DNA from: Saccostrea cucullata
Lineage: Eukaryota
Assembly: GCF_032062105.1 (NCBI RefSeq)
Contig: NW_026941041.1
Span: 62,001-126,000 of the forward strand
Reading direction: 5' to 3'
Length of the DNA stretch: 64,000 bases
Shown here: in pieces, positions 12,091 to 58,383 of the stretch
How positions within the stretch are numbered: position 1 is the stretch's first letter
How the letters are laid out: each line of letters starts with the position of its first letter
Made by a program: the position numbers and the translations under genes
Notes under the pieces: model-generated
What the model was told of the DNA's origin: nothing
The model's database searches: none
The model's input: the letters and a program-made list of their open reading frames with translations, nothing else

Positions 12091-13374
12091 TAGTATTTAC
12101 TTACAATAATAATGAGATTGAAATTGTAAAAGAATTTAAATATTTAGGAGAGTTTTTTTTTTTTTTTTTTCAAGAACTGGATCATTTTATAGTACTAGAA
12201 AATATACTGTGCAAAGAGCAACAAGAGTTATGTACGCCATAATAAAAAAAGCACGAGAATTTAATTTGTCCATTGATTGTCAAATTGATATGTTTGATGA
12301 AATGGTTATCCCTATCCTTCTTTATGGTTGCGAGATATGGGGATTTGAAAATGTAAACATTATTGAGAAACTTCAACTAAAATTTTGTAAACTTATACTT
12401 CAACTTAAGACATCTACCCCAAACTATACGGTTTATGGCGAGCTTGGTAGATATCCATTAAGTGTAAATATTAAAATGAGAATGATAAAATTTTGGGCAA
12501 AACTGTTGAAATGTAAAGAAACAAAATTATGTCACATTTTATGTAGTTTTCTATACAGTTCATCAATGTACAACAATGTTAATTGTAGTTCTAAATGGAT
12601 TGAAAGTATACAAAATATTTTACAAGAATATGGTTTGAACTATGTCTGGATGTCTCAAAATGTAGGAAATGAAAAATGGTTGTTAAATATAATGAAGCAA
12701 ACACTCATTGATCAATTCATACAAAATTGGAATTCAAATTGTGATGCATCGAGTAAAGGCAAAATTTATAAATTGTTCACTAATAGTAATTTTACATCTA
12801 GGCAGTATTTAAATATCAATGTGTCAACTAATACTACAATTACATTAACAAGATTTAGAACCAGTAATCATAAATTACCCATAGAAAAAGGCCAATGGAG
12901 TAATATACCCTCAAACCAAAGACTATGTACTCTATGTAATAATGATATTGGAGACGAATTCCATTATATTATGTCGTGTCCAGCTCTAAATGATAGTAGA
13001 AAATTGTGAATCCCATCAACATATACAACTCGACCAAGTGCTTTCAAGTTTTCAAATTTATTTTCATGTAAAAAAGTATCCGTTATCAATAACCTTTGTA
13101 AATTCATTACTATAGTTAATAAGAGAGTTACCCCTCCAGGTTAATGTATACCATACAAATACTAAAGTTTTGAGTCCGAACATTATTTAATCTAAAACAA
13201 TAAAATTCAACTAGTATACATTGTGCACATGCGTGAGACGAAAGCGGTCACGAAATTTTTGCTCTTACTGGAAAGGAACTTTTTTGAAGTTTTAAATGGT
13301 ATTTGTAAATATTGAGCCACGAAGATAAAGATATTTGTGTGATATGTCTATTGGAGTATTTAGAAGGATTTAAA

Positions 13375-40465: not shown

Positions 40466-41849
40466 TTACAAACGTCCCCAGACAATAACCTCCGCCACGG
40501 AGAGGTAGTTGTTCCACCCCTCCACAATCTGTATCTCAACATAACGACCGAATGTGTTGTACGGACAAAACACTGCGATCCGCTCCCCACCTCTGGTAGA
40601 GGGTCCTGTAAAGTGGCCACATAGATGCATGGCGTGTAGATCATTGCCTACACGTATATCTACGTCATGAAGCCGTTCAGCTGAAGAAAAAATATTGATA
40701 TAGCAAATAAATGTTTGATGTTATCAAAGCTAAAGAGATAGAGGAAGATGAGATTTTATAATAAATAATTATTTGATTCTAATATTGATCAGAATTTGCA
40801 TTTGAAGGCTATTGCATGATATAGTATATCCGTGGATTTAATTTAATATATTTACAATAAGAACTGTAACATTTGACAATTGTATGATGTAAAATGTTCT
40901 ATTTAAGGAATCACTGTCTAGTTAGTATAGTATGCCAGGACATCGACGATAGTGGGAAACATTAGATTTGCGAAGCCCGTTATGAATAACATATCCCATG
41001 TTGAAGCCCGTTATACAAATTATCCCATGTTTCCCATGATGTCCTTGGCATACTTTACTATCTAGACAGTGATTATTTATATTTCCATTTCATTGTGAAA
41101 TAAAATTGTAAATTTAGACTTTAAAAATGTAGAGATAGATTTAATTTACACGAGGACTCCCATGCCTATTTTAATAGTCCTCGCCCACTGACGTCAAACA
41201 CATTGGCATCCGCACGAGATTTACAAGCATATTTGGCCTCCTTAGCGTCAGACACAGAGACAGATGCGCATGAGATTTGCATGCATATTAGGCCTCCTTA
41301 GCTCCTGATCTATCAACCTGCCTAGTTTACATTCTGGTAGAGTTATGAAGAAATCAACTCCGCTAGCTTTCAAAGAGTTATCACAGAGAAAAAAAATTAG
41401 AAATGGAAATATATACAATAACATGTCGTTGTAACAAACACTAATTACATAAAAGTTAAATAAAATATTTCAAATAATTATTGGACAAGCCCCAAAATGC
41501 TGTTTAATTTTAAAAAGTAAAAACATTGGCTATCGACAAGTGTAAATGAAAGCTTAGTAAACCTACGGCAACAATCTCTCCTGTTAAATACTTCTACTTC
41601 ATGAACTGTGTAGTTCCTTCCCAGATCGATTCTTATCCATGGATTTTTTTCTAGTTTCGTATGGGTGAAGTCCGTGAAGACACCATTGACGGCATAAGAC
41701 GCTGGTATATGGTGATAAGTTGAGCTCTGTCTTGCGAATTTACCATACGCCACATTCTTTAAATTACGCGGAAGACGGTGACCCATCGTGTTTTGGATAT
41801 CACAGATGAAAGCCAAAAACAAGACCGATAGCAAAGAGCAAATCACCAT
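40466..41849 (-). CDS. F-type lectin (fucolectin), paralog A (165 aa)
   Basis: Exons 41849-41567 and 40680-40466. Signal peptide; NVAYGK..QSS; exact H-x26-R-x-D-x4-R motif (RRDCCPER); GRYV; LSVAEVIVWG. Confidence 0.92.
40903..41081. mobile_element. Long hairpin element (Crypton-like) in the lectin intron
   Basis: TTAAGGAATCACTGTCTAG...CTAGACAGTGATTATTTATA inverted arms. Confidence 0.55.
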
Positions 41850-42456
41850 TATGATATTGTTAAAAAAATCTAGGGATGATCTTCCTTGCGTTTGTCTTTT
41901 TTTGTAACTAAGTGTCGTGATTTTTTTCACAACAATAGTTATTGTTGACAAATGCACGGGTGATCGTACATGTAACAGGTGTGAGCATTATTTTTATTGC
42001 ATTTATCAGTAAGGGGAGACTTGTAACCAGATATATGTACTAAAACTTAAAACCGAAACGTGCAGCATGCACTATGTAAAATAATAATAAAATCTCTATA
42101 ATACATCTTAATGTATTTAAATAATATCAAAATAACTTGCAAAATTAAGTTTTGTTCTGTAAACATGTATATAGGGAGTTCTGATAAAAGTTCCCCCAAG
42201 CCCTTTGATTTATAACTACATGTACTAAAAATTGGTCGCAGTTAAGGAAAAACACATGAGGAACTGTTGAATAAAATATTCTTCAAGTGGGATAAAACAT
42301 ATTTGATTACTTCAAACCCCCAAGGTTATTTTCAAAAATTTAAAATCACATAATTTTACCTTAATAAAAATCATAGAAAAGTGAAACTTTCCAACACTCT
42401 ATTTAAGCCTTCCCAATTAAAAATTAAAAGTCCTGGCTTCTTGTCACCACAGACAG

Positions 42457-49546: not shown

Positions 49547-51149
49547 AGACTTGTGTGATTTGTTCTACCTGGGCCATACATGTATTGAATGAAAACTATT
49601 CATAGAACCACAAGAACATTGTAAATCTATGTAAGGTCTTCTGTGTATGTTGTATTCCTTATATAATTTACTGTTTTATAACAAGACTTTGTTTCATTGG
49701 ACAGACCAGGTACTAAAACTTAATACATGTACACATACAAAACCAAAAAACAGTTGTGATATTTATTGTTTTTTATTACTCATTAGTTCTCATTTTTGTG
49801 TGAAATTTTATAATTTTCCATTTCTTGTTCCCCAAAACCATATCTTACAAATGTTAGGGTATATTCGGGTAATTCCGGACAGCGGGTAATTCCGGACAGA
49901 AATAAAATGCCTCTGTTTTATGTTATCGTCAATGAAAATCGTCTTATTTTCTCTGAATTGTGTGTATCATTTTGGAAAATAAAACCTTTATTCTTTTCTA
50001 TCATATTCATTTTTAATCAAAGGGAATTCCCGATTATTTAGCATGACGTCAATAAAATGACCTTTGCACTTTCTGTTTTGTTGTTGTTGTCGATTTGCGG
50101 GAAAATTCAACTTGCTTACACCAGAGACCAGAGTGAAAAAACTACGAAACAAGTAAGTATTAAATGAAAATATTTTAATAACCGTAATATTTTAGTTCAA
50201 AGAAGTTAAACATCGAAAAAATTTATGTTATATTATATTTTTATGTCAAATTTTAACTTAAAATGAAAAAAATAAAATGTCCGGATTTACCCTACCAAAA
50301 AAATTAAGTGAGGGTAATTGCGGACATAGTTAAATTGTGTTCTTTTAGCATTTCTATGTGATTTATTTTCATCTGGGCCTACATTAAATCTATAAGATTA
50401 CGAAATTCTAAACTAGGCCTATTTGAATTAGTTGTTTACATAATATCATACATAATAAATTAATTTCAAGAATGTATTATGCTGTATCAGTGTATGCTAC
50501 AGAGACTCATGCAGAGTCACGCACTGGGGGAAAAGGGTCGCTGCAGAACTGTAGCTCTCCGAAAAAAAAGATCAGCCTATTGACAGACCGGAGTATGTAT
50601 TTTTTTTCGTATAGCTACAGTTCAGCTAGGGAAAACGTGTGAGGGGGCTCTTAAACTAAAATTCTCGGGCACAGATAAAGCATTTTAAAAGCTTTCATAA
50701 TCATCAACTCGTGTGTGCGCAGGTGTGGGTGGGTGATGTCCGTTACAGTTATCTACTACAAAATGTATCTACTAAAAAAAAATGAAATACTGATTATTTA
50801 AAAAAAAATAAAACAGGGGCCAAAATGCGAGTTGGGCGAAGAGAAAATCAAATCCATAGTAACATGACGGGACAGTCATAAAGTGGAAGAGCTCAAATAT
50901 ATTTAATACTCTGTTCTGCCCCCCCCCCCCCCCTTTTCCCCTATAAAGCAGCTCTTTTTTAAGAGTGAGTGATGATATAATATTTTTTTTTACAATTTAA
51001 ACGTACAAAATAAGGTGCCTATAATACGCTGGAAATATTTATTTAAAATTATACTTATGAATTACTCAAATCTACACACCGTGACACGCTTAAACATAAT
51101 AAATTCTTCCTACATCTTATCCATTTCAGTTCTATACATTTCCGCAGAG

Positions 51150-51530
51150 ATGCCAATTTTAGTCATCCACAACTTATGGGCCGTCGGAATGCACCACTGG
51201 GGACCTAAAGAATTGGCAGTGGGGGCAGGGTATAAGCTCCAACATGAAGAAAATAATCCATATGATTGTAATGCGACGGCAATATTAGACGGGCCAAATA
51301 AGAAGGCATATTTAAAACGGACAGATGCCAAAATAGTATCGTCTTTGTTTACTATTGTACCAGGGTCAAAATGGTTATTAAAACCTAAAGAGGTCCCAGT
51401 AGTACTGAATCAACGTGTTGGTCCACAACAGCGATGTTCGATAGGCTGCAGGATTTCGGACGATTCTGTACTTCAACGAGTTGTCCACGAACTTGATTCT
51501 TCAAATATCATTTATGAGATCAAATATTAA
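51150..51530 (+). CDS. Stand-alone HIRAN-domain protein (126 aa) inside the transposon
   Basis: AVGMHHW...YKLQHEENNPYDCNATAI...KAYLKRTDA matches the HIRAN pattern (G..., L..E..NPYD.NA, Y+.R). ATG is 2 nt after acceptor ttccgcag; AATAAA at 51562. Confidence 0.8.
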   Translation: MPILVIHNLWAVGMHHWGPKELAVGAGYKLQHEENNPYDCNATAILDGPNKKAYLKRTDAKIVSSLFTIVPGSKWLLKPKEVPVVLNQRVGPQQRCSIGCRISDDSVLQRVVHELDSSNIIYEIKY

Positions 51531-52252
51531 AAGTAAATGACTGTGTGATATTATTTAATTAAATAAAATTCCGAGAATTCTTTTTTTTCTTCATTCAATC
51601 GAAAACATATAGGGAATGAAGCTTATTCCTTATTATTAAGTGTAGACAATGAGATTTTTTTTTCTTCCGGAAAAGGCTTCAAATTTTACACATTTTCAAA
51701 GTTATGTCAAGCGGAGTTATATGTTTTTGACGTATTAAACTCATTGTAACGTACATGTAGGCAAGTTATGTTATACAAAATGGGGAGGGGGGATGCACAA
51801 ACGTGTCGGTATGCTGGATAACAACTTAAATTTTTCGCTTCCAGCATTCGAGCTCAGGCACCCCCCCCCTACTTTTTTACTAATTCTATAGAAATGTTAG
51901 TTGAAAGTATTGTTCCCCCCCCCTGTTAGTGATGTGCGCAAAAATGTAGTAAAAAAGTACAAAAATTGGTCCTGACAGTAGTTGACACCCCCCCCCCCCC
52001 CCGAAATAGGATTTTCGACTTAGGGCAATCCCCCCGCCCTTTTTTTTTTGCTTGACAACATTTTCAGGTAAGTTAAATTTTTTTCTTCTTTTCTCCCCCC
52101 CCCTCACCACTTTCACGATGTTACGTGCCTGGATCTGAAAATCAATCTGAATTTAACCACAATTTCTCGGCTATTTCAGATGAAAATAAATCACATAGTA
52201 CTCATTTTACATATCATTCAATAGAACATAAGGTTAAATATTTTTACAGAAC

Positions 52253-54073
52253 ATGCCAAAAGCATACAAGCAACGGAAAAGAGAACCTTACAGCTCTGAG
52301 AGTATGCAGAATGCAGTGTCCTCTGTAATGAAAGGCACTTACTCCATTAGAAAGGCTGCAGAAATGTTTAATGTAAATAAATCAACCTTCCATGACACGA
52401 TTAAAAAAAAGTATAAGAACCCTGGTCAACCTGGTAGAAAAACAGCGATCCCACCAGAAGTTGAACAAAAGATAGCAAATGCTTTGAAGGAAGCATCTAA
52501 ACAGGGCATGGGCATTTCAAGGCGGCAATTATTGCGCCGGGTAGGCAGTTTATGCAAAAAAATGAAAATCGAGGTTGATCAATTTAAGCAACAGACCCCC
52601 GGAAAGGACTGGTTTGTTGGTTTTATGAAGCGACATCCAACACTGTCAATTCGCAAACCAGAGAAGTTAGCGACAACAAGAGCAAGGATGACAAATCCGG
52701 CGATAGTCTCAAAATATTTCGATGATCTTGGGCAAATTCTGAAAAATCTTGGCTTGTTATCAAAACCTGCGTGCATATGGAATTGCGATGAAACTGGAAA
52801 AAGTTTTGAGCACACACCAGTAAAAGTCATTGCGGAAAAGGGATCTAAGGCTGTGGTAGGGAGGACATCATCATGCAGGACAAATATAACGGTCATGGCA
52901 TGTGTGAATGCTGCTGGGGGTAAGATGTCTCCATTGTTTATTGTCAAAGGCAAGACATCCAGATCCTTGCATGGATTTAACACCCTTGCTGCCCCACAAG
53001 GAACACGCTGGCACTACCAAGCTAATGGCTGGATGAATGACGACATTGGCGAAAAATGGTTTGAGGACGTTTTCCTTATGGAGTGTGGCACAGAAAGGCC
53101 CCAGCTCCTGATTCTGGATGGCCACTCCTCCCACGAGAGTCTTTCCATCATTGAGTTGGCCATCCAGAATGATATCCACATTCTGAGCCTCCCTCCTCAT
53201 ACTACACATGCCCTTCAGCCTCTTGATCGCTGTGTATTTGGTCCGCTTAACAGCGCCTACAACACTGAATGCTCAAACTTCCTTAACCAGAACCCACTCA
53301 ACAACATCAACAAATGGTCATTTCCAGGTATTTTGGCCGTTGCCTGGGAAACAGCTGTCTCCAAAACAAATATCCAAGCTGGTTTCCAATCATGTGGCAT
53401 ATTTCCGTTTAATCCATCAGCTGTTGCTCCTGAGCTGTTGAAGCCTTCCATTCCTTCAGATAAGCCCAAACCCCTTCTGTCTTCCGCAGATGAAATATCA
53501 TCAACCACCACTCTTTCTAAGCATTCTGAGGTATCCTCTGGTCCCCCCTCGGTTTCTGGTCCTTCTGTATCTTCTTCTAGTGGTCCAGTATCTTTCACTA
53601 TTGTCTCTTCAGGAGTTGGTTCATCCTTATTGCCTACAGTCACCCCATCTACACGACAGGATCTTTCCATTAATGAGGCCCCTTAAATCAATGACAGTCA
53701 AGATAGTACAATAAGTCTTGTTTCACATGTTGACAATATGACAACTCCTCCCTTGGCAGATGACCCAGAAATGCTACTTGCATTGATAAATGATGGCCAT
53801 GTAGAAGTATTTACCCCAGACAAAGAGGGCACAGTTGAAATTCATCAGTCTGGCATTTGGGATTCCGCCATATCAGACATTTTTCTCCCACTTCAGTCTG
53901 TTGAACCAAATAAACCAGCTGAGCCTAAACCGAGATCAAAGTCTTCATCTCACAGACTCTTGACCTCGGAAGAAATTCTTCTGGAAAAACAGATGATGTG
54001 GCAGAAGAAGGAGAATGCTAACCTGAAAAAACAAAAGAGAAAGGAAAAGCTTGATTTAAAGAAAAAAAAATGA
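52253..54073 (+). CDS. pogo/Tigger-like transposase (HTH_psq, CENP-B HTH, DDE_1), with a break in the C-terminal tail
   Basis: ORF 52253-53686: SIRKAAEMFNV, GKDWFVGFMKRHP, WNCDETG, ILDGHSSH, LQPLD (35 residues between the 2nd and 3rd D). The tail continues as 53738-54073 (RLLTSEEIL, Lys-rich end). Confidence 0.92.
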
Positions 54074-54399
54074 ACCCCTTCATACATTTAATCTGATGAC
54101 AAAAGTTTGATTGACAAATTGTTTATTTATTGTTTCTGTTAAGCATGATATTTATTTCATTGTTGATGACGAGTATTTTATACTTAACAAGGCACCACTA
54201 CAAGAATGAATACCTTAAGTTTCTGTATTTTTATATGTTGACAACTGAAAACGAGTCACCAGAAAATTACTGTAAACTGGTTAATTTAAATAATTCATAC
54301 TGTTAACTGGTTAAATAAATAAATACCCTTTCTGGCATGAAGTTCCCAGCTGTAAAATAATTTCAATTTCTCATGTCTCTTTTTAAAGGTGTTGATTAT

Positions 54400-54552
54400 T
54401 TAAGGAATGAATTTAATAGCTACCCATTTTATAAACTGGGTTGGGGCAGTTTACGCTTTATAAACAGCGAAGCGGAAAAGGCGTAGAAGTGCTCCAACCC
54501 ATGCAGTTTATACCGTATAAAATGGGTAGCTATAAAATTCATTGCTTATAAT
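54400..54552. mobile_element. Long hairpin element (Crypton-like) nested in the pogo element
   Basis: TTAAGGAATGAATTTAATAGCTACCCATTTTATA...TATAAAATGGGTAGCTATAAAATTCATTGCTTATAAT. Confidence 0.55.
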
Positions 54553-57500
54553 TTAATTTTCATTTATTTTATGTAAGGAAAAAAGATGATTGTTCTAACA
54601 AAATGACTTTTAATTTGTACAAAATTTGATTGTCGTCAGGCGGATTGATACGTTTTTGACGGAAGTCATTGTGACGTAGGCAACCCATTTTATACGATAT
54701 ATAAAAGTAATTTTTTTTATCTTATTAATTACAGCGTTACAACCAAAATTAATTTATTAGCAACTTGTTGTAACGTTATTTTTAAAAGGTGTATTCTACT
54801 TCTCCCAAGATCGTATGTGTGTGTGTGTATATCCTTACTCTGAGTTTCTGATCAAATTAAAGTATTTTAAAGTTCCTAAATTAACTTACCATTGATGCTT
54901 TTCAGTTACGATGATCTTAGCGTTCTTTTTTCCTTTTGTTAATATATGACTTCTTCTCCGCTGTTTACAGCTGTATAACTTGTCATCAATGCGACTGACG
55001 CTTTAATTTATATATCCAATGGCTATTCCATTATACCAAGGGGTTGTCAGGTCATTCCATTGATTGATGCAAAAAGGCATTGATTTTTTTTTACCTTTCA
55101 ACGCGTGCCTCAACAAACAGACTTTCAAGGGACTGTTGCGTTTTTTTTTTTTGTTTAAAGTCATATACGCTATATGAACGCCGAATTTAGGTTGAAACAA
55201 AATGATCAACGATTTAAAACACATGAAGTATAATAAAAAATAATACTTTCCACAAAATTGTACTATAGATGTCGTTGTAATAATAAAACAATTAAACAAT
55301 ATCTAGGAATCAAGTATTCAGTCTTTTCATGAATATTGATAAAGGAAGTGCGTAAACAGTAGGCCTATATATAGAAACACATGTCCACGGGAAATCACAG
55401 ACAACGAGGTATGTGGCATTTTGACAACAATTATTAATGTAAGGTTAATATGCATCATAACAGAGAAGATTGTTGATACTTAAATACATTAAAAGGTAAA
55501 GTACCATTAAGTATCCACGTCAAAAGTGAGTAGTATCTCAAACGGTCTACCTTGTTTTCTTTACGCCACGTGTGTTTATCAATCTAAAAGTACGGCGTCA
55601 CGTGATGGATTTATTTAAAAATAGCTGTTTTTCTTTCCTTGCAGGATAATAAATAATTATAATTTGATAACTTTGTAACGCGTTTAATTTTAATGGTGTA
55701 ATTTACAGTATTTTCGTAACTTTTCTTGATAAACAAATTGTATCAATTTCCAATCCTATTTTAACTGGCGCAAGTTATAGCGTGTATACTTTTAAACGGA
55801 ATGAAAATGTTTAAATGAAAGGCCGGTCTCTCTTTCCGGCATCAACTGAAGTTTTATTCAGTATCACTATGGTTAAATTATGATCGCAGTTTCCCGGTAG
55901 ATGTTTATTAATGTACCTCAGCGATTTTAATGTCAACCAAATATAAAAGCTCGCTTAAAAAAAAAAGAAATTCAGATTAATAGCGATGTCAACTTGTCGA
56001 AATGATATTTAAAATTCATAAATACCCCCCCCCCCCTCATCCATCGAAAAAAATCTTACTTTGTACATCTTCTGTCTCATTCTTGGCTTCTTCTTTGATG
56101 AATATTCATTCATTGTGTTTAGAATAAAAGAATTTGCAAAAATAGATATTCTGACGCAAAAAATCGAATTATTGGTCTTTTCTGTACTTTTAGCCTAAAT
56201 TAGTATTTACTATAAAGCCACAGTACACCACATAAATAAACAATGATAAAGTTATACACCAAAAAAATCGTAGAATTTTCATACACATCCATATGTGTGT
56301 GTTTGTAAAGGGAAGGGGGGGGGAGTAGTGACATATCAATCAGGATCGGATTATTTATGTTATTCTCATTTGATGGTATATAGTTTTATTCTTTTAAAGA
56401 ACAGATTATTTATTGTAAAATGCAAACTCCCCTCTCATCAAAAACAAATGGTCGTCCCCATAGATTCTGAAGTCCAAAAGTAACAAACGAGATGTAAGAT
56501 ACTAAGAAATTTAATTTTAAATATTTCTAAATAGAACTGTATTAACAACTGAGATGCTTTATATAATCGTGCTGCGGATCTTTGAAATCTTACAAATAAT
56601 CTATTTACTTACTGTATGCTATTATTTGGCATTGCACGTTTACGCCGCCATACAAGATTGGCCTGTCCGGATTTACCCGCATTGTGTCCGGATTTACCCC
56701 ACTCTGCCAATACGTTTTATTTTGCTAATATTTGAATAAGACCTGGGGGAAAACAATCTAAAACATCAATTTATCGAGGATTATGCATGGAATTCACACA
56801 TCGATTCAAAACTGGGTTACCCATCAATCAGTTTCGCGCTGCTACTCCCACCGAACAACGCTTATGTGAGTTTTGTCCGGAATTACCCGAATTTACCCTA
56901 TGTATTGCAACTTGCTTTTCAATTTTAACTTGTTATACTTGACAAAAAACAAGAGGTACTGTGAGCAATGAACTGACTAAATGATACCCCCGCCTCCCAT
57001 ATGATTATAATGGAAAAGTCCATGTTTTGCTGTGGCCGGGAAACCCAAAATATTTGTCAGGTCAAAAAGTAAAAGAGGAGGTGCACAATGACAATATGTA
57101 ATAAAGATTCTGTGAAGGTTTCATTAAATTTCACTCAGTGGTATAAGAGGAATTGCGGATAAGATATGAGGACATATTGTTTATTCTTGTTCCTTGGTTT
57201 CAATACTACAATCCATCAAAATATTTATCACCCCCCCCTTTAAAAAGATTATGCTTCAAATATATGTCATTAAAGTTTTGCACATGAGAACCTGCAAACA
57301 TGCTTCCGCCTATCAGTACTCTCAGTACTTTGATTTTTTTATTAATTTTTGTTTTTCTGAAATTTAAATTTACTGAAAATCTATTTTATCAAATACTTTT
57401 ACGTTTCAGCACTGTGAAAAAAGATGATTTAAAACTAATTGACAAAGTGCACTTTGTATGCCAAAACTTATTATTAGAAAGATGATAAGAATAAAAGTAT

Positions 57501-57708: not shown

Positions 57709-58383
57709 TTACAAACGTCCCCAAACAATGACTTCTGCAACAGAGAGGTAGTTGTTCCATCCCTCCACAATCTGTATCTGAACATAACGACCGAATGTGT
57801 TGAACGGACAAAACACTGCGATCCGCTCCCCGGATCTGCTGCAAGATCCGGTAAAATGGCCGCATAAATGCATGTCGTGCAAATCATTGCCAACTCGTAT
57901 ATCAACGTCATGAAGTCGTTGAACTAAAAGAAGAATTCAAAAAAAGCGAAAGAATATAGAGTAATACAGTATACTACATGTGTCTAAAGCTACATTTACA
58001 GATACAATTGTAAGTGAGAGAAGACCCAAGAAAAACCCTCATCTAATCTACAAAGGTGCTTACAATGCAAATGTCAATGATAAGATATAATGAAACTTAC
58101 AACAACAGTCTTTCCTACCAAATACTTCTACTTCATGGACTGTGTAGTTTCTGCCAAGATTAATTCTAATCCATGGATTTTTTTCCAGGTCGGTATGGGT
58201 GAAATCCGTAAAGACACCGTTTACAGCATTACCTGCCAGTGGGGTACTTCCCCAACTGGGGTCCGTGCTTTGAGAGGCAGACTTTCCATATGCCACATTC
58301 TGAAGAACGTTGTGACCAATCGAATATTTGATTTCAGAGTTGAAAGCCAGAAATATAATAAACAGCCGGTAACAATTTATCAT
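57709..58383 (-). CDS. F-type lectin (fucolectin), paralog B (165 aa)
   Basis: Exons 58383-58101 and 57923-57709 (same 283+215 nt as paralog A); H-x26-RKDCCFQR motif. Confidence 0.92.

Follow-up and report, generated by a model that had tools for sequence, protein, structure and literature searches.

A pogo-superfamily transposon family of Saccostrea cucullata with a stand-alone HIRAN-fold gene beside its transposase

Background

Transposons of the pogo and Tc1/mariner groups are standard one-gene elements, from which tools like Sleeping Beauty and Passer have been derived. Cut-and-paste elements gain copies when the donor gap is repaired from a template or when they jump during replication, and this gain is usually credited to the host. 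A transposon-encoded, non-catalytic protein that recognises DNA 3' ends is known from bacteria, in the form of the clamp-binding TnsE of Tn7, which binds 3'-recessed ends.

Within the pogo superfamily, the Fot/Fot-like family has been described by Gao et al. 2020 (PMC7386202) and an oyster Fot1-like subgroup by Dupeyron et al. 2020 (PMC7325037); published pogo elements measure 1.2-5.2 kb, and their one or two ORFs encode transposase. Eukaryotic DNA transposons with accessory genes of DNA metabolism are represented by KolobokD/E/P/H (PMC9587614) and by Tec and TBE (PMC7325037). [quoted passage not shown] 2006, as relayed in PMC3417536). In titles and abstracts no publication describing a pairing of HIRAN with pogo or a transposase was found, and the word HIRAN is absent from both PMC7325037 and PMC9587614.

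Results

The window (i.e. the whole stretch of 64,000 nucleotides of Saccostrea cucullata DNA that was analysed) contains a multi-copy pogo transposon at 49857-56898, for which a preliminary description had claimed matched terminal inverted repeats (TIRs) and TA target-site duplications. This claim was borne out: the two 25-nt TIRs (49857-49881, forward strand, and 56874-56898, reverse strand) differ by 1 mismatch and have TA at both outer sides (49855-49856 and 56899-56900), and sister copies have identical termini in unrelated flanks, with TA present in all but one. The core motif of the left TIR is repeated directly at 49883-49899, a further internal pair at 50278-50327 (putative transposase-binding sites) has a layout common to family B, L061 and L062, and two more TIR-core motifs lie subterminally on the forward strand at 56664-56702. 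A nested 633-bp non-autonomous repeat (55159-55791, with a TTAA duplication at its flanks) is missing from the sister copies and foreign to the pogo family, which without this insert is ~6.4 kb long, more than the described pogo elements, and has a second, unrelated gene.

Both the HIRAN ORF and the transposase gene lie between the TIRs on the forward strand. The transposase frame (52253-54073, 606 codons) matches the Pfam domains DDE_1 (PF03184, E 2.9e-30), HTH_psq (E 6.4e-8) and HTH_Tnp_Tc5 (E 0.035), and has the catalytic triad D179, D289 and D325 (DD35D, i.e. a spacing of 35). [quoted passage not shown] The short TIR and TA duplication are likewise shared with Fot/Fot-like elements. While the DD35D transposase proposed previously, in the same orientation as the HIRAN ORF, was thus recovered, the window copy is broken by a premature in-frame TAA at codon 478 (53684-53686), downstream of the catalytic core, after which the frame continues to 54073. 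The transposases of sister copies are open over 610-635 aa, and the window copy is probably defective. AATAAA does follow each gene, as had been noted (51562-51567 and 54314-54319, both forward strand), but as possible poly(A) signals these motifs are weak evidence, because the DNA is ~67% AT.

The HIRAN ORF (51150-51530, forward strand) is intact and encodes a stand-alone protein of 126 aa. Its match to Pfam HIRAN (PF08797) is weak (E 0.003, 17.7 bits versus a gathering cut-off of 24.7), although family members do exceed the gathering score, with a Pfam match in 13 of the 19 members tested. A search of the PDB with the single sequence gave nothing useful, and profiles were needed; the family profile matches HLTF with E 6e-10. 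The predicted model (pLDDT 97) has the HIRAN beta-barrel fold and aligns with HLTF HIRAN with Z 13.7 over 116 residues and an rmsd of 2.6 (TM 0.72, E 2.6e-6 by structure comparison), so that the HIRAN fold attributed to the ORF was confirmed at the level of model and profile despite the sub-cut-off Pfam score.

H16, N36, Y38, D39, Y54 and R57 of the protein align with Y72, N91, Y93, D94, H110 and K113 of HLTF, and across 104 family sequences D39 (93%), N36 (90%), H16 (92%) and R/K57 (94%) are conserved. Compared to the HIRAN domains of HLTF/Rad5 (PDB 4XZF, 4S0N, 5BNH), the equivalents of D94, N91 and K113 are therefore kept in a common fold, whereas the transposon protein has neither helicase nor RING domain and shares only ~15% identity, with H110 replaced by Tyr and Y72 by His (the latter in 92% of the family). 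The position of Y93 varies: the window protein has Tyr there, and family-wide Y (40%), F (18%), K (12%) and H (12%) all occur, Y/F/H making up only ~70%. With Y93 variable and Y72 replaced, the ligand may differ from that of HLTF. The conserved surfaces K78-P79-K80 and G91-P92-x-Q94, with the motifs LKPK and GPxQ, are specific to the transposon family. By analogy with HLTF HIRAN, the protein quite probably holds single-stranded DNA by its final one or two nucleotides where the 3'-OH is free.

Bacterial and phage stand-alone HIRAN (lp_0118, PDB 3K2Y) resembles the transposon protein in being a single-domain, mobile-element-borne HIRAN protein, but is not known to be linked with any DDE transposase. 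It also gives a shorter match: the model is covered over residues 1-124 by HLTF and only over 1-103 by lp_0118, which leaves the C-terminal helix and strand uncovered, and the family profile scores HLTF higher than lp_0118. No real relative came up when contigs of viral, metagenome and prokaryotic origin and phage records were scanned (L074 and L075 being weak matches in those scans, L075 without a matching ORF), and no close relative was found in phage records and prokaryotic genomes. Classical HIRAN exons do occur in the Saccostrea cucullata genome.

The pairing of HIRAN and pogo is old, the genes having stayed partners in many divergent families and in the genomes of several animals. In the Saccostrea cucullata genome, where linkage was read from match coordinates plus 1.5-kb flanks, a pogo transposase follows directly downstream at 19 of the 26 divergent HIRAN loci. 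Among 12 homologues from other samples, 9-10 adjoin such a transposase, in either gene order. One TIR pair encloses both genes in L061 and L066 as well. Distances between HIRAN proteins correlate with those between transposases (Spearman 0.46, Mantel p 0.0017); for trees, frameshifts in transposon genes were bridged with X. Clustered at 50% identity, the HIRAN homologues fall into 179 groups, almost all stand-alone and of similar length; the long proteins P0049, P0092, P0136 and P0199, which look like HIRAN-transposase fusions, were interpreted at the protein level as probable gene-caller merges, or as deletion derivatives, of neighbouring HIRAN and transposase genes. The HIRAN family escapes notice in databases, as gene callers merge it with adjacent transposase pieces and Pfam frequently misses it. 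On the contigs of at least 13 related transposase loci (46-68% identity), some of which have long open frames, no HIRAN match was found, and the HIRAN gene therefore appears to be optional within the transposase clade.

The HIRAN ORF is present in sister copies, full length in five, where it is 97.6-99.5% identical without gaps, compared to 86-94% with many gaps for the flanking non-coding DNA. One successful non-autonomous subfamily carries it broken. Between families, HIRAN dN/dS values are 0.11, 0.23, 0.28, 0.08 and 0.14 (synonymous sites being near saturation), all below 1, and the protein is under purifying selection. That HIRAN might be a separately nested element was rejected, as it lacks termini of its own while occupying the same position in sister copies and other families. 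Altogether, the proposed two-gene system of pogo plus stand-alone HIRAN is supported and withstood the three refuting conditions set in the preliminary description, the ORF being a selected partner of many transposon families.

The left end of the element carries a CRE-like motif (50044-50051, forward strand, +188 from the terminus), a putative promoter element by inferred function, which has the same offset in family B, while CACGTG is found at +179 in L062 and +181 in L061. Further in, at +297 (50153-50158, forward strand), lies a putative 5' splice donor for a non-coding leader exon, with offsets of +297 in family B, +293 in L062 and +290 in L061. Putative CAG acceptors on the forward strand lie 2 nt 5' of the HIRAN ATG (51145-51147, conserved across families) and 3 nt 5' of the transposase ATG (52247-52249); YAG is located 0-3 nt 5' of the ATG in 12 of 18 ORFs, versus 8.6% background, and the putative layout of one donor and two acceptors is conserved in both gene orders. 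From these sequence signals it is likely that a single left-end promoter yields a short non-coding leader exon which can be joined to either ORF by splicing. Another donor-like site, at 52068, was set aside, since it is missing in sister L003 and other families. The exons were examined separately, and the single RNA run contained only unspliced, low-depth contigs and no leader-ORF junction, at low coverage.

Discussion

What the HIRAN protein does for the element is best explained, albeit tentatively and with a probability somewhat short of even, by binding to the 3' overhangs left by transposition and a bias in their repair. Its ligands would then be the ends cut by the element's own transposase: when Tc1/mariner-type elements excise, the donor break is left with short 3' overhangs, and strand transfer in turn leaves short gaps (PMC8151067). 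The cut position of mariner/Tc1 is assumed here for the pogo transposase too. The HIRAN protein may cap these ends in trans and thereby shift repair from simple end-joining to templated repair off the sister chromatid, which would restore the donor copy and raise the copy number. Such a repair bias would account for a gene that is helpful yet dispensable.

A target-selection factor like TnsE, with HIRAN binding nascent or recessed 3' ends at forks or repair gaps, recruiting the transpososome and favouring S-phase insertion, is possible though unlikely; the binding of 3' ends by HLTF HIRAN at stalled forks and by TnsE at recessed ends would fit, as would the two family-specific surfaces, which could bind a partner, but no feature beyond TA within AT-rich DNA is seen at the insertion sites. 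It is rather improbable that HIRAN limits or times transposition, either by capping the transposon 3' ends or because leader splicing to HIRAN diverts transcripts from the transposase. The conserved one-donor, two-acceptor layout and the inhibitory alternative transcripts known in Tol2 (PMC8151067) point in this direction, yet a pure splicing sink would need neither a conserved HIRAN pocket nor a dN/dS well below 1.

The protein could also be directed at the host, as a helicase-less decoy that competes with HLTF/Rad5-type enzymes for 3' ends and damps fork reversal or damage signalling, so that cells with breaks survive. This would agree with the match to the whole of HLTF HIRAN beyond that to lp_0118, with the higher profile score of HLTF, and with the classical HIRAN exons of the host; it is nonetheless improbable, as a small protein whose gene sits in an element of low copy number would have to be strongly expressed to displace the enzymes of the host. 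Finally, that HIRAN is neutral cargo, a captured host-gene fragment hitch-hiking in a few elements, might be suggested by the many related transposases without HIRAN and by the subfamily in which it is broken. This was rejected on purifying selection and on the conservation of the ORF relative to its flanks, and the 179 mostly stand-alone clusters of similar length, HIRAN's own conserved ATG and acceptor, and its retention in two gene orders also speak against it, which leaves this reading with hardly any probability and already largely refuted.

Returning to the preferred reading of end binding and repair bias, a role as element-encoded 3'-end binder can be tested directly with versus without the gene, because HIRAN-plus elements, apparent minus relatives and open copies occur in one genome. 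The presence of a HIRAN gene in pogo hints that these transposons steer the handling of their own DNA breaks, and the small protein could be used in transposon vectors to adjust targeting or the formation of footprints.

Conclusions

Like KolobokD/E/P/H, Tec and TBE, the pogo family presented here combines a DDD/E transposase with a second gene that is specific to the lineage and at times absent. The accessories of those elements are nucleases, helicases, a recombinase, a zinc-finger protein or KolX, however, none of them being HIRAN and none occurring in pogo. The chances seem about even that an ancient, widespread eukaryotic cut-and-paste lineage encodes a 3'-end binder, alternatively spliced from the transposase promoter, which would control break repair or the landing site and would thus be either a copy-gain factor or a functional counterpart of Tn7 TnsE. 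The latter is a possible functional analogue by analogy only, TnsE being bacterial, clamp-binding and of an unrelated fold.

The mobile unit and its copies

The element under study spans 7,042 bp (49857-56898) and ends in 25-nt inverted repeats (1 mismatch) with TA at each side. The TIR-core motif is found again immediately inside the left TIR, in an internal pair (50278-50327) and at two places close to the right end. The host genome is AT-rich, 1.17 Gb in size and, judged by the distribution of homologues, that of a mollusc, probably a bivalve. A search of it returned seven or more short derivatives as well as several copies of nearly full length (91-96% identity), with identical termini, differing flanks and TA in all but one; these common termini in unlike flanks uphold the boundaries drawn from the TIRs and TA in the preliminary description. 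A foreign repeat of 633 bp (55159-55791), nested with a TTAA duplication, is missing from the sister copies (i.e. other copies of this family in the same genome). It has imperfect short TIRs beginning with purines and many copies elsewhere at 95-98%; under the rule of TTAA and 5'-RR (PMC9587614) it would class as a non-autonomous element of Kolobok type. Inverted repeats 3' of the transposase (54401-54701) recur in several sister copies: the arms, of 33 nt, are 94% complementary, and a third arm is related to them. Further out, 12209-16256 contains fragments resembling LINE reverse transcriptase and ORF1 (common repeat debris), and two similar exons that resemble fucolectin/F5-8-type lectin domains flank the element (41478-41957, +; 58060-58383, -).

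The transposase (52253-54073, +) matches HTH_psq (E 6e-8), DDE_1 (E 3e-30) and, weakly, HTH_Tnp_Tc5. Its catalytic triad, D179-D289-D325, bears out the DD35D assignment made earlier, with the correction that the frame of the window copy is stopped by an in-frame TAA at codon 478, 3' of the catalytic core; in four sister copies it is open for 610-635 aa. The element is a pogo member, Fot-like in architecture. Unlike those of the window family, transposases of a transposase-first group (loci L065 5616-6383 and L066 2035-3834) carry a C-terminal PHD-like zinc finger, which in L065 matches Pfam PHD at E 6e-4.

The small ORF as a HIRAN protein

The 126-aa ORF (51150-51530, +) alone matches Pfam HIRAN at E 0.003, under the Pfam cut-off. 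Searched against the PDB, a profile of 104 relatives matches only HIRAN structures of HLTF, a repair enzyme whose HIRAN domain grips DNA 3' ends (E 6e-10), and the stand-alone bacterial HIRAN lp_0118 (E 1e-6). The AlphaFold model (pLDDT 97) resembles HLTF HIRAN according to both Foldseek (E 2.6e-6, TM 0.72) and VIA (Z 13.7 over 116 residues, rmsd 2.6; next unrelated chain 8.7). By family profile and predicted fold the ORF encodes a HIRAN protein, as had been proposed.

In HLTF, the 3'-OH is read by D94 and the last two bases are pinched by Y72 and Y93 (PMC5773155, PMC4666394). The HMMER alignment places D39, H16 and Y38 of the window protein at these three positions, and N36, Y54 and R57 at HLTF N91, H110 and K113. 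Among the 104 sequences D39 is conserved in 93%, N36 in 90%, H16 in 92%, Y54 in 82% and R/K57 in 94%, while residue 38 (the Y93 equivalent) is Y, F or H in about 70% only. By alignment, the transposon family thus retains the putative 3'-OH reader with altered stacking residues. Since the HLTF match takes in the C-terminal helix and strand and the lp_0118 match does not, the ORF may have been captured from a eukaryotic gene of HLTF type.

Selection and long-term linkage

A full-length, stop-free HIRAN ORF is present in five other copies (96-100% identity). Aligned between sister copies it shows 97.6-99.5% identity and no gaps, against 86-94% and 10-15 gap openings in the non-coding DNA to its left and right. 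Comparisons between families give dN/dS values of 0.11 and 0.23 (the window against a pair of Logan contigs), 0.28, 0.14 and 0.08, synonymous sites being saturated or nearly so; the pooled within-family value, from few changes, is about 0.5. The check suggested in the preliminary description therefore came out in favour of the gene, with the ORF kept in sister copies and dN/dS below 1 between families.

Among 26 HIRAN-family loci of the host genome that lie outside the window's family, a count from match coordinates gives 19 that are followed within 4 kb by a pogo transposase in the same orientation; the transposase identities range between 64% and about 30%. The context was looked up for 12 homologues from other samples: nine clearly and one probably adjoin pogo transposase sequence. 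One TIR pair with TA ends encloses both genes in L061 (HIRAN first) and in L066 (transposase first), so gene order is variable. Named homologues occur in Mytilus galloprovincialis and Tegillarca granosa; in the gene models of these species HIRAN is merged with DDE_1 or HTH_psq pieces. A full HMMER scan gave 179 clusters at 50% identity (E below 1e-10), and the best 150 of these are nearly all stand-alone proteins, mostly of 110-145 aa. In a set of 13 paired elements, HIRAN distances correlate with transposase distances (Spearman 0.46, Mantel p 0.0017), and the two trees agree in their main groups; because related rows share history, this signifies long association and not molecular co-evolution. 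The HIRAN gene is a long-term selected partner of the pogo transposase. One element, C122, may on weak support have swapped modules.

Two called proteins (P0049 and P0223) join HIRAN and a transposase without HTH_psq in one chain; deletion, a merge made in gene calling and true fusion are the alternatives. In the ESM Atlas, clusters of short HIRAN-like proteins (score 0.92), whose labels are mainly Cnidaria (145 aa) and diatoms (133 aa), may extend the transposon family beyond molluscs. On the P0112 contig (ENA ERZ25070167) a distant HIRAN homologue adjoins an Endonuclease VII gene and small ORFs instead of a pogo transposase, and the HIRAN family may occur in another mobile element too.

An apparently optional gene and its putative expression

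A heuristic, deep-profile genome search found no HIRAN on the contigs that hold 13 or more transposase loci of 46-68% identity, a few of them or more with open frames of 630-735 aa. The gene is likely truly absent there, and looks optional for related transposons. A non-autonomous subfamily has spread successfully to at least seven copies although it lacks a transposase and its HIRAN ORF is interrupted by an insert of ~770 bp that has short inverted ends (L013 2978-3746, also in L015, L017 and L019); a protein acting in trans would allow this. Three other HIRAN-family genes of the host genome are cut at one position (residue 33/34) by ~2.9 kb, with no pogo transposase match nearby (C4012:88718-91998, C13071:31374-34649, C13788:30582-33858); a shared insertion, an intron-containing version and a domesticated copy are the alternatives.

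Of 18 HIRAN and transposase ORFs from different families, 12 have a YAG 0-3 nt 5' of their ATG, versus 8.6% of window ATGs (binomial p 2e-9, overstated as some families are related). Counted from the left terminus, a donor-like site sits at +297 in the window family as in family B and, with weaker scores, at +293 in L062 and +290 in L061; L052 and L053 share it too, and a convincing donor was not found in L066. CRE- or E-box-like motifs lie ~110 nt upstream of it in the window family, family B, L062 and L061. Contigs from one RNA run of low depth are unspliced, with no junction. The simplest reading of the sequence would be that a single promoter serves both ORFs, with a non-coding leader exon joined by splicing to one or the other.

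Possible roles of the HIRAN protein

In transposition of the Tc1/mariner type, cleavage of the non-transferred strand falls a few bases within the element, so that short 3' overhangs remain, and NHEJ closes most donor breaks (PMC8151067). The predicted HIRAN pocket, which would hold the last two nucleotides with a 3'-OH, would fit such overhangs. Tentatively, we favour a protein that would cap the ends made by transposition and thereby tilt repair toward templated restoration of the donor, as this would bring a direct copy-number gain and account for an optional, trans-acting gene. TnsE-like targeting of forks or gaps seems less likely, self-regulation of transposition is rather improbable, and a decoy against host HLTF slightly more doubtful still; that the gene is neutral cargo we consider very improbable.

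Comparison with known systems

The HIRAN-pogo pairing is real. No HIRAN-transposon pairing turned up in a search of titles and abstracts that did not extend to Repbase and most subscription journals, and an earlier mention may exist. Without the 633-bp insert the window family is about 6.4 kb long, exceeding the 1.2-5.2 kb reported for pogo elements (PMC7386202). Phages and bacteria are known to have stand-alone HIRANs (Iyer et al. 2006 as cited in PMC3417536), and known carriers of accessory DNA-metabolism genes include Kolobok lineages (PMC9587614) as well as Tec and TBE (PMC7325037).
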